A stretch of DNA of 64,000 bases from positions 124,001 through 188,000 of the IMG/VR virus record IMGVR_UViG_3300042261_001312. One strand, given 5' to 3'. Below are positions 32,746-32,882 of this stretch, one piece after another; positions within the stretch are counted from its first letter, which is position 1; every line of letters starts with the position of its first letter. Made by a program: the position numbers and the translations under genes. The notes beneath the pieces are model-generated. The model had not been told where the DNA came from and ran no database searches. It saw only the letters and a program-made list of their open reading frames with translations.

Positions 32746-32882
32746 GGAGGGTTAGCAAAATAAAAAACAAAAAACATTATTTAACTACTCTTCTCATTGA
32801 GAGAACTCATGGTGTTTACAGTAATAGGTAAAGCAATTGTGTTGAAAACAATGATTTGTTGGTTCGATTCCAACACCCTCCA
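32746..32882 (+). ncRNA. tRNA-Ser(TGA anticodon)-like RNA with ~65-70-nt hairpin insertion in the D-loop
   Basis: Acceptor GGAGGGT/ACCCTCC, anticodon arm ATTGT-GTTGAAA-ACAAT, T arm GTTGG-TTCGATT-CCAAC. Insert 32757-32825 carries AAAAACAAA, the helix AAACATTAT/ATGGTGTTT and ACAGTAAT. Confidence 0.75.

Follow-up and report, generated by a model that had tools for sequence, protein, structure and literature searches.

Does a stretch of jumbo phage DNA that reads like a tRNA-Ser(UGA) gene with a hairpin inserted in its D-loop encode a genuine RNA, and, if so, does the inserted element stay in that RNA or is it removed? The question arose from an earlier note on a 64,000-nucleotide stretch of DNA (henceforth the window, to which all positions refer), corresponding to bases 124001-188000 of the 327,676-bp IMG/VR virus record IMGVR_UViG_3300042261_001312. 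From the sequence alone, the note described a perfect 7-bp acceptor, an anticodon arm and a T arm surrounding an insert at 32757-32825. It proposed that this insert contains, in reverse order, a module shared with a 'His-like' RNA nearby, of which the locus would be the topological inverse. It further considered serylation doubtful because of a short variable loop and A73, and suggested that the insert might be spliced or excised.

The record is 31% G+C, is estimated complete and represents a jumbo phage with about 40 ordinary tRNA genes, mostly on the minus strand at 33-65 kb. These include a canonical class-II tRNA-Ser(UGA), a tRNA-His(GUG) and a CUA-anticodon tRNA. The same DNA is present in two independent freshwater/lake samples, and one contig runs continuously and without differences across the locus.

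Direct reading of the sequence bore out each element that the note had listed. The single-sequence minimum free energy (MFE) fold reproduces the acceptor, anticodon arm and T arm, together with a 9-bp helix (P2) and a small closing hairpin (P1) inside the insert (z = -2.1). About 66 nt lie between tRNA positions 15 and 18. As U8, A14, A15 and G18G19 are conserved, the insert is placed between nt 15 (32760) and G18 (32827), in the D-loop alpha region, which refines the boundaries given in the note. For the closing hairpin, the family alignment favours CUCUU/GAGAG, while the register proposed in the note, UUCUC/GAGAA, is an equally long alternative in this one sequence. The features of the locus and its neighbours are collected in the table.

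Features of the insert-bearing RNA and of neighbouring units (window positions; A1, alignment of 22 distinct insert-bearing sequences; A2, alignment of 30 permuted sequences; L025 and L048, two members of A1 outside its main clade)
Position	Strand	Feature	Observation
32746..32752	+	Acceptor 5' strand (GGAGGGU), tRNA nt 1-7	Pairs perfectly with 32875-32881; in A1, 5 of the 7 pairs show compensatory change and 100% of cells are paired
32753..32760	+	U8 A9 G10 C11 A12 A13 A14 A15, core nucleotides on the 5' side of the insert	U8/A14 kept in 20 of 22 sequences; G10-C25 and C11-G24 kept in 19 of 22; 12-23 and 13-22 are A/A in the main clade and paired in L025/L048; R15:Y48 is A:U in 14 sequences and G:C in L025/L048
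32761..32771	+	A-rich single-stranded linker (AAAAACAAA; module B of the note)	Length and sequence vary, but always A-rich in A1; the same A-rich strand precedes P2 in every bracket-type unit
32772..32780	+	P2, 5' strand	Pairs with 32809-32817 in the MFE fold; RNAalifold gives 7 bp and 98% of cells paired; a U-G wobble conserved in 20 of 22 sequences ties the structure to the + strand RNA
32781..32787	+	Internal-loop strand J2	UUAACU (32781-32786) is complementary to acceptor/D nt 5-10 (GGUUAG, 32750-32755)
32788..32803	+	P1 hairpin closing the module: CUCUU (32788-32792), 6-nt loop, GAGAG (32799-32803); alternative register 32791-32795 / 32801-32805	5 bp, of which 4 show compensatory change; 100% of cells paired
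32804..32808	+	Internal-loop strand J1 (AACUC)	AAC (A59 A60 C61) invariant in A1; the same (G/A)AAC follows P1 in bracket-type units
32809..32817	+	P2, 3' strand (AUGGUGUUU)	Supported by the MFE fold and by A1
32818..32826	+	Junction strand ACAGUAAUA (module A of the note)	CAGU (C74 A75 G76 T77) invariant in A1; present at every module copy
32827..32835	+	G18 G19 U20 A21, D-stem 3' strand A22 A23 G24 C25, and A26	GG kept in 21 of 22 sequences
32836..32852	+	Anticodon arm: 5-bp stem, 7-nt loop GUUGAAA (UGA, positions 34-36, at 32843-32845)	Stem covaries in 3 of 5 pairs; loop is GUUGAAA in 9 of 22 sequences and variable otherwise
32853..32857	+	5-nt variable loop GAUUU (class I)	5 nt here and in all 22 homologues
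32858..32874	+	T arm (GUUGG-UUCGAUU-CCAAC)	Stem covaries in 3 of 5 pairs; GGUUCRAnUCC conserved
32875..32882	+	Acceptor 3' strand (ACCCUCC, 32875-32881) and discriminator A73 (32882)	No CCA encoded here; discriminator is A in 17 and G in 5 of 22 sequences; by eye, some relatives appear to encode CCA after N73 (not tallied)
33604..33742	+	Circularly permuted tRNA-like gene ('His-like'): P1-P2, ACAGUAAU, T arm, acceptor 3' strand, GCCA-AAAAU loop, acceptor 5' strand, D arm, anticodon arm (loop CAGUGAA), A-rich strand, P2-P1	MFE fold equals the centroid, z = -2.9; in A2, the T, acceptor, D and anticodon stems all show compensatory changes
32495..32619	+	Module in bracket form around tRNA-Asn(GUU) 32519-32591: P1 AAAAGGA 32495-32501 / UCCUUUU 32613-32619; P2 UGUUA 32509-32513 / UAACA 32599-32603; ACAGUA 32516-32521	Twenty-six orthologous units in relatives share the same bracket
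32631..32703	+	Plain tRNA(CAU)	Constant member of the operon; present in relatives
32708..32721	+	GAAGA-GUAA-UCUUC hairpin	P1-only remnant at the place where relatives carry complete module units

To determine whether this structure is under selection, related loci were collected and aligned, a comparison that the note had itself set as a check. A pattern composed of 12 nt of the module plus a T-loop found 47 viral contigs, where we estimate that about one would be expected by chance. The flanks GGGAAAAC..AAAGU and AACAACAAAUACUUU..UUCCC were not part of the pattern, yet are nearly invariant in those hits. From these loci, 22 distinct homologues of the insert-bearing RNA were obtained from related uncultured freshwater jumbo phages, and RNAalifold recovered the acceptor, P2, P1, the anticodon stem and the T stem. 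On that structure, 99.1% of cells are paired and 17 of 29 pairs show changes on both sides. None of 500 shuffles reaches the observed values, and slid controls fall to about 50% paired. A covariance model built from the alignment finds exactly one full copy in the phage's own genome, at this locus, with 147 bits. A21 is kept in addition to U8, A14 and G18G19, indicating that the tRNA core is maintained on both sides of the insert. The observation made in the note is therefore correct and far above chance.

The module shared with the His-like RNA is likewise real. The 14-mer GTGTTTACAGTAAT occurs exactly twice in the genome, once at each of the two junctions named in the note, and the His-like RNA is a circularly permuted tRNA-like gene. 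Moreover, the same unit recurs several times per phage. It consists of helix P1 (5-8 bp), an internal loop with (G/A)AAC.. on one strand and ACAAAU-like sequence on the other, helix P2 (7-10 bp), and the strand ACAGUAA facing an A-rich strand. P1 differs between unit types (GAAGAA/UUCUUC, GGGAA/UUCCC, AAAAGGA/UCCUUUU, CUCUC/GAGAG) but is always complementary. In the insert-bearing RNA the module, about 65 nt long, is one closed copy. Turned inside out, it brackets the permuted tRNA-like RNA, a normal-order tRNA (in this window tRNA-Asn), 5-bp/7-nt-loop hairpins that look like isolated anticodon arms, and G+C-rich hairpins with 7-nt loops. This general role as a bracket was missed in the note, as was the fact that the whole region is one conserved operon of small RNAs.

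In a compact relative (locus L138), the whole set sits between a promoter-like site and a terminator, with 5-35-nt spacers between units, and comprises two insert-bearing RNAs, tRNA(CAU), an anticodon-arm unit, the permuted RNA and a last unit. In this window, the same operon runs from about 32420 to about 34100 and is interrupted by a segB-like GIY-YIG gene, which is missing in relatives and in a low-depth strain in the same sample. The operon always lies between a DnaB-like helicase gene and a conserved 555-aa gene. The locus is syntenic (RecA-like, 5'-3' exonuclease and DnaB-like helicase upstream; conserved 555-aa and ARPP-1 proteins downstream), and none of these neighbouring proteins has an RNA-related annotation. 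The sequence GTTCTTTAA, found upstream of several units, was tested as a phage-wide promoter, but occurs 19 times in the genome against 16 expected and is thus not general. A sigma-70 scan was uninformative.

The variable parts of these units evolve fast. Orthologous bracketed tRNAs with near-identical bodies carry the anticodons GUU, GUC, UUC, UCA, UUA, UCU, CGU, CGC, GCU and UAA. The permuted and the insert-bearing RNAs also vary in their 7-nt loops, often without U33, although the insert-bearing RNAs mostly keep UGA. In addition, nt 4-10 of the insert-bearing RNAs are complementary to internal-loop strand J2 of the module (GAGAUAG/CUAUCUC in most), with 91.6% of cells paired and two pairs with double changes, the changes on both sides occurring in homologues L036 and L040. 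In this window, the equivalent GGUUAG/UUAACU was read by eye, three columns out of register with the tested alignment columns. This pairing excludes acceptor pairs 4-7 and the last 3 bp of P2, and its covariation is only weakly above the controls. We therefore retain it merely as a possible co-transcriptional folding helper, which may hold the 5' strand until the distant 3' strand has been transcribed.

Is the insert-bearing RNA a tRNA-Ser? It carries a serine anticodon, but its body is class I, without a long variable arm, and it lacks the G73 discriminator. The doubt about serylation expressed in the note is thus justified, and the RNA is not a canonical tRNA-Ser. Nor is it recognized as a canonical tRNA. 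ARAGORN finds nothing, and the Rfam tRNA model (RF00005) scores only 23.7 bits against a gathering score of 29, and only for 32811-32882, showing that standard tRNA finders miss these genes. While the acceptor, anticodon and T stems, U8, A14, G18G19 and the T-loop are present, a 3-4 bp D stem is not. Only G10-C25 and C11-G24 pair, positions 12-23 and 13-22 being A/A here and in 18-19 of 22 sequences, and only L025 and L048 have a 4-bp stem. Consequently, taking out the insert would not restore a normal D stem in the main clade.

We next asked whether a form without the insert exists. There was none in 2.9 million viral contigs. Three hits in metagenome contigs are chance matches inside coding regions, and a looser D-arm pattern found only unrelated ordinary tRNAs in other phages. 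No assembled RNA form without the insert was found either. Searches of sequencing runs and placement of reads on the locus gave only DNA, no run listed as RNA holding the locus for this phage or its relatives. In bacterial genomes, 4 of 34 pattern hits are real, and all 4 lie on MAG contigs that look like mis-binned phage, including one contig of 362,763 bp. A blastn search of 32400-34200 against 50,697 phage records matched only the segB-like gene. Rfam 15, at gathering threshold and at E up to 10, gave nothing but tRNA. In particular, no small self-cleaving ribozyme family (hammerhead, twister, pistol, hatchet, HDV-like, hairpin) matched in the window, in 31500-34000 at E up to 10, or in 10 related loci, and inspection by eye for the hammerhead CUGAUGA/GAAA core and for hairpin-ribozyme loops did not fit. 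The phage encodes a T4 Rnl1-type ligase, an AAA_33 kinase and a CCA-adding-family enzyme, whereas searches of its genome revealed no TROVE/Rsr, RtcB, tRNA splicing endonuclease (PF01974), PNK3P-type phosphatase or RNase III. No paper on permuted or D-loop-interrupted tRNA-like genes in phages was found in the library searched.

Taken together, the element is a genuine, selected RNA gene, belonging to a short operon that is conserved in one clade of freshwater jumbo phages, apparently of Bacteroidota, and in which the module is the constant part of most RNAs while a tRNA-shaped or anticodon-arm-shaped 'head' is the variable part. Our preferred, though tentative, reading is that the module stays in the mature RNA. 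It sits where a tRNA fold tolerates an extra arm: the D-loop alpha region in this RNA, the variable-loop position in the permuted neighbour, and beyond the acceptor end in the bracketed tRNA-Asn. There it would act as a common handle for a protein or RNA partner, and the heads would present tRNA features, namely the T-loop/D-loop elbow, the NCCA region and a fast-evolving 7-nt anticodon-like loop. For this RNA, RNase P would cut at G1, followed by trimming at A73 and CCA addition, so the RNA may be chargeable, although it is not a tRNA-Ser for SerRS. The structure, its conservation, its modularity and the operon context rest on the analyses above, whereas retention of the module, its role as a handle on tRNA mimics with the partner binding this implies, and the processing steps are inferred. 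In support of retention, no insert-free copy was found, and removal would leave a 2-bp D stem in the main clade. Hairpin heads of 25-45 nt make sense as the tips of a roughly 75-nt module RNA but little sense as released products. Some permuted members have an acceptor closed by a 5-nt CAGUG or CAAUG loop with no CCA, and the bracketed 'tRNAs' inspected by eye appear to have AU-rich acceptors without G1 or an encoded CCA. Head loops are hypervariable among orthologues with the same body, several lacking U33, and the phage lacks a splicing endonuclease, RtcB, a PNK3P-type phosphatase and RNase III. The phage encodes a CCA-adding-family enzyme, and precedent is provided by T4 species 1 RNA and YrlA.

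On the other hand, several features favour removal. The main rival reading, which we consider doubtful but only somewhat less likely, is that the module is an intervening or processing element, cut out at its two junctions (near ACAGUAA and in the A-rich strand) with joining of the cargo-side ends. It would act as a D-loop intron in the Ser-like RNA, while in the permuted neighbour its two halves would pair, cutting and joining would give a circle, and RNase P and 3' trimming would open that circle at the acceptor loop. The agent would be a new ribozyme or an unrecognised endonuclease, with the phage Rnl1-type ligase doing the joining. The occurrence of one module, with exact 14-mer identity, as an insert in one tRNA and as leader plus trailer of a permuted one is exactly the signature of splicing-type processing in archaea and red algae. 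The two linkers between module and tRNA core are long and single-stranded, about 11 and 9 nt, which suits cleavage sites better than a rigidly placed domain. Most permuted members encode NCCA right after the acceptor 3' strand, suggesting that the acceptor end is opened, and bracketed tRNAs with plausible decoding anticodons, including UCA and UUA, would have to be freed to work. In L025 and L048, precise removal would restore a canonical 4-bp D stem and an AGUU..GGAU D-loop. The invariant loop nucleotides with covarying helices look like a small catalytic or recognition core, the phage encodes the ligase, kinase and CCA-adding enzyme, and its genome holds other interrupted tRNA-like genes. 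However, the searches for insert-free sequences, known ribozymes, a splicing endonuclease and RtcB were all negative, the main clade would be left without a D stem, and tiny hairpin cargos are odd products. Furthermore, there is no bulge-helix-bulge (BHB) geometry: both unpaired strands lie between P2 and the tRNA body, on the same side of P2, without conserved staggered 3-nt bulges around a 4-bp helix, and the 4-bp UAAU/AUUA helix seen in this phage is not conserved. Splicing or excision, as suggested in the note, is thus not shown, and its interpretation is only partly supported: the cloverleaf-with-insert architecture, the reversed sharing of the module and the doubt about serylation hold, the 'tRNA-Ser' label does not, and the splicing idea remains open.

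A cleavage-only signal appears unlikely. In this view, host RNases (RNase E/G/Y-type or RNase III-type) would cut the single-stranded linkers beside P2 to dice the polycistronic precursor, leaving the Ser-like RNA as a nicked two-piece tRNA held by its acceptor stem and, after RNase P cleavage, the permuted RNA as a two-piece class-II-like tRNA held by P1-P2. The single operon running from a host-type promoter to a terminator with short spacers, the A/U-rich single strands next to stable helices, and the processing of M. smegmatis YrlA in this way agree with it, as do the class-II-type D arms (3-bp stem) of the permuted RNAs. Inspected members of the short-loop subfamily have G73 and those of the other A73, so P1-P2 could stand in for a long variable arm. 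Yet an 11-15-nt 5' piece held by 7 bp would be fragile, and the invariant CAGUA and AAC are more specific than known RNase E or RNase III determinants. Still less likely is that these are YrlA-type partners of a host Ro60/Rsr protein with P1-P2 as the Rsr-binding helix. The permuted architecture matches YrlA, Bacteroidota can encode TROVE proteins, as a control showed, and an ACGAA-like motif recurs in the internal loop. However, the phage has no TROVE gene, no Rfam Y_RNA or YrlA model matches, the motif alternates freely with ACAAA, and the Ser-like RNA carries the module inside a tRNA with free ends, which no Y RNA does. Finally, a dead tRNA gene disrupted by mobile DNA, or a chance arrangement, could be suspected from the adjacent GIY-YIG homing-endonuclease gene and the failure of standard tRNA finders, but is excluded by the compensatory changes in 22 homologues. 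The insert is never absent from the collections searched, and the endonuclease gene is a separate downstream insertion, itself absent in relatives. Conserved G-U pairs make the structure strand-specific, which also rules out a DNA-level inverted repeat or MITE.

tRNA genes interrupted outside the anticodon loop and circularly permuted tRNA genes are known only from archaea and a few algae, where they depend on the BHB splicing machinery. That one conserved module is found in a bacterial virus inside a tRNA, around a permuted tRNA and around anticodon-arm mimics either extends this processing logic to bacteria and phages or defines a new class of modular tRNA-mimic RNAs, each made of a constant handle and a variable tRNA-like head. 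The latter may be relevant to the arms race over tRNA-targeting defences and to the long-unexplained T4 species 1/2 RNAs. The system is undescribed in the resources searched, while tRNA-like phage RNAs and permuted or interrupted tRNA genes are already known. The system would be categorically new if the module proved to be a splicing element or a ribozyme. In its furthest form, which we regard as unlikely, the phage would carry its own non-group-I tRNA splicing and permutation system, in which the module, a new small ribozyme or the recognition site of an unknown endonuclease, is excised from a tRNA D-loop and also drives circularisation of a permuted pre-tRNA and of small anticodon-arm RNAs, the Rnl1-type ligase joining the ends.

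How, then, does the locus compare with known systems? Like non-canonical introns and permuted genes processed through BHB motifs (Archaea, Cyanidioschyzon merolae and some green algae; PMC3400036), it shows one structural element as an insert at a non-anticodon position in one tRNA gene and as paired leader and trailer of a permuted gene in which the 3' half precedes the 5' half. Here, however, the host is a bacteriophage, BHB geometry and a phage-encoded splicing endonuclease gene are lacking (bacteria are not known to have this enzyme), the module is about 65 nt with invariant loop nucleotides, and no spliced product is known. Group I introns also interrupt tRNA genes in bacterial systems, but are over 200 nt, sit in the anticodon loop and have a P3-P9 core, whereas this insert is 66 nt, lies in the D-loop and has no Rfam intron match at E up to 10. 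Two-piece tmRNA from permuted ssrA genes shares the order in which T arm and acceptor 3' strand precede the acceptor 5' strand, as well as a possible mature form of two base-paired pieces, but here there is no tag reading frame and no G3:U70, ARAGORN finds no tmRNA, and D and anticodon arms are present.

YrlA and other bacterial and phage Y RNAs with a tRNA-like domain resemble the permuted neighbour, though not the Ser-like RNA itself, in having a stem formed by the two RNA ends, followed by T arm, acceptor stem-loop and D arm; the YrlA with a 7-bp acceptor stem is cut by RNase P and receives CCA (PMC4201824). In contrast, no Ro60/Rsr gene is adjacent or phage-encoded, the Rfam models do not match, the permuted family keeps a full anticodon arm, its stem leaves from the variable-loop position, and the Ser-like RNA has normal tRNA ends and carries the module internally. 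Phage T4 species 1 RNA (rnaC) is annotated as a small stable RNA encoded in a tRNA cluster near a segB-type GIY-YIG gene, and folds into a T arm, an anticodon-like arm and a terminal acceptor-like stem with a roughly 60-nt hairpin where the D arm should be. It thereby shares with this RNA a tRNA-like 3' part with a long hairpin at the D position and a place in a tRNA cluster beside segB. It accumulates at about 140 nt, which means that its insertion is retained. There is no sequence similarity between the two and no ACAGUAA/AAC module in rnaC, T4 has no permuted partner and no bracket-type units, and the terminal stem of rnaC is imperfect, whereas this RNA has a perfect 7-bp acceptor.

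Upstream of the operon, TTG is followed by 20 nt and then TATGTTTG, an arrangement that resembles a Bacteroidota-type promoter (-33 TTG, -7 TAnnTTTG). In addition, MAG bins that hold relatives are labelled Bacteroidota or Bacteroidetes, which hints at the host phylum. At the other end, about 350 nt of further non-coding sequence follow the permuted RNA and end in a hairpin plus a U8 terminator-like site, whereas relatives have another module unit with a G+C hairpin head at this position. The listed 89-aa ORF overlaps tRNA-Asn, tRNA(CAU) and the insert-bearing RNA, and we take it to be spurious. 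Positions of these and further features are collected in the table below.

Features in the window and elsewhere in the genome (G000, phage genome; the G000 features lie outside the window)
Feature	Sequence	Position	Strand
Promoter-like site	window	32422-32452	
89-aa ORF, taken to be spurious	window	32562-32831	
GAAGA-GUAA-UCUUC hairpin	window	32708-32721	
segB-like GIY-YIG homing-endonuclease gene	window	32933-33574	
Non-coding sequence after the permuted RNA	window	33752-34102	
Hairpin plus U8 terminator-like site	window	about 34053-34102	
Start related to the conserved non-coding element	window	near 24361	minus
tRNA-like gene with long insert	G000	274224-274393	+
tRNA-like gene with long insert	G000	274512-274631	+
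tRNA-like gene with long insert	G000	5428-5604	-
tRNA-like gene with long insert	G000	5669-5795	-
Class-II, Leu-like tRNA	G000	c53909-54016	
CUA-anticodon tRNA	window's own genome	c33976-34047	

Within the operon, GAAGA-GUAA-UCUUC, a GNRA-capped, P1-only hairpin, sits where relatives carry one or two complete module units with anticodon-arm-like heads. Moreover, a segB-like GIY-YIG homing-endonuclease gene is inserted between the insert-bearing RNA and the permuted RNA. This gene is absent in L017, L028, L036 and L138 (L numbers denote loci of related phages), as well as in a low-depth strain in sequencing run X1, where the joint is 32852>33603, while a similar insertion is present in L034 and L139. 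Another conserved non-coding element of about 130 nt, starting CCUAAGAAUC..., is found between the insert-bearing and permuted RNAs in L011, L012, L014, L020, L023, L025, L035 and L042, and has no Rfam match. A related start (GACCUAAAAAUUGAC) lies in the window, on the opposite strand to the operon.

In the subfamily of permuted RNAs with a GGGGAUA-type acceptor (L010, L011, L014, L023, L032, L037 and L042), the acceptor is capped: N73-C-C forms a 3-nt bulge, and nt 76-80 pair with leader nt -1 to -5. These pairs covary (AAU/AUU, AUU/AAU, AAAU/AUUU, AUUA/UAAU). Among the bracketed tRNAs, orthologues of the window's bracketed tRNA-Asn carry stop-codon-reading anticodons in some phages, namely UCA in L076, L014, L037 and L054, and UUA in L080. 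The window's own genome has a separate CUA-anticodon tRNA.

Further interrupted tRNA-like genes were observed in the genome outside the window. Of four such genes of 120-180 nt, at least three share the acceptor AGUCNGN...NCUGACUA and a class-II-type D arm; all four carry long inserts, and one of them contains a second T-arm-like hairpin. In addition, a class-II, Leu-like tRNA (Rfam 40.8 bits) has an insertion of about 21 nt in its anticodon loop, which is far too short for a group I intron.
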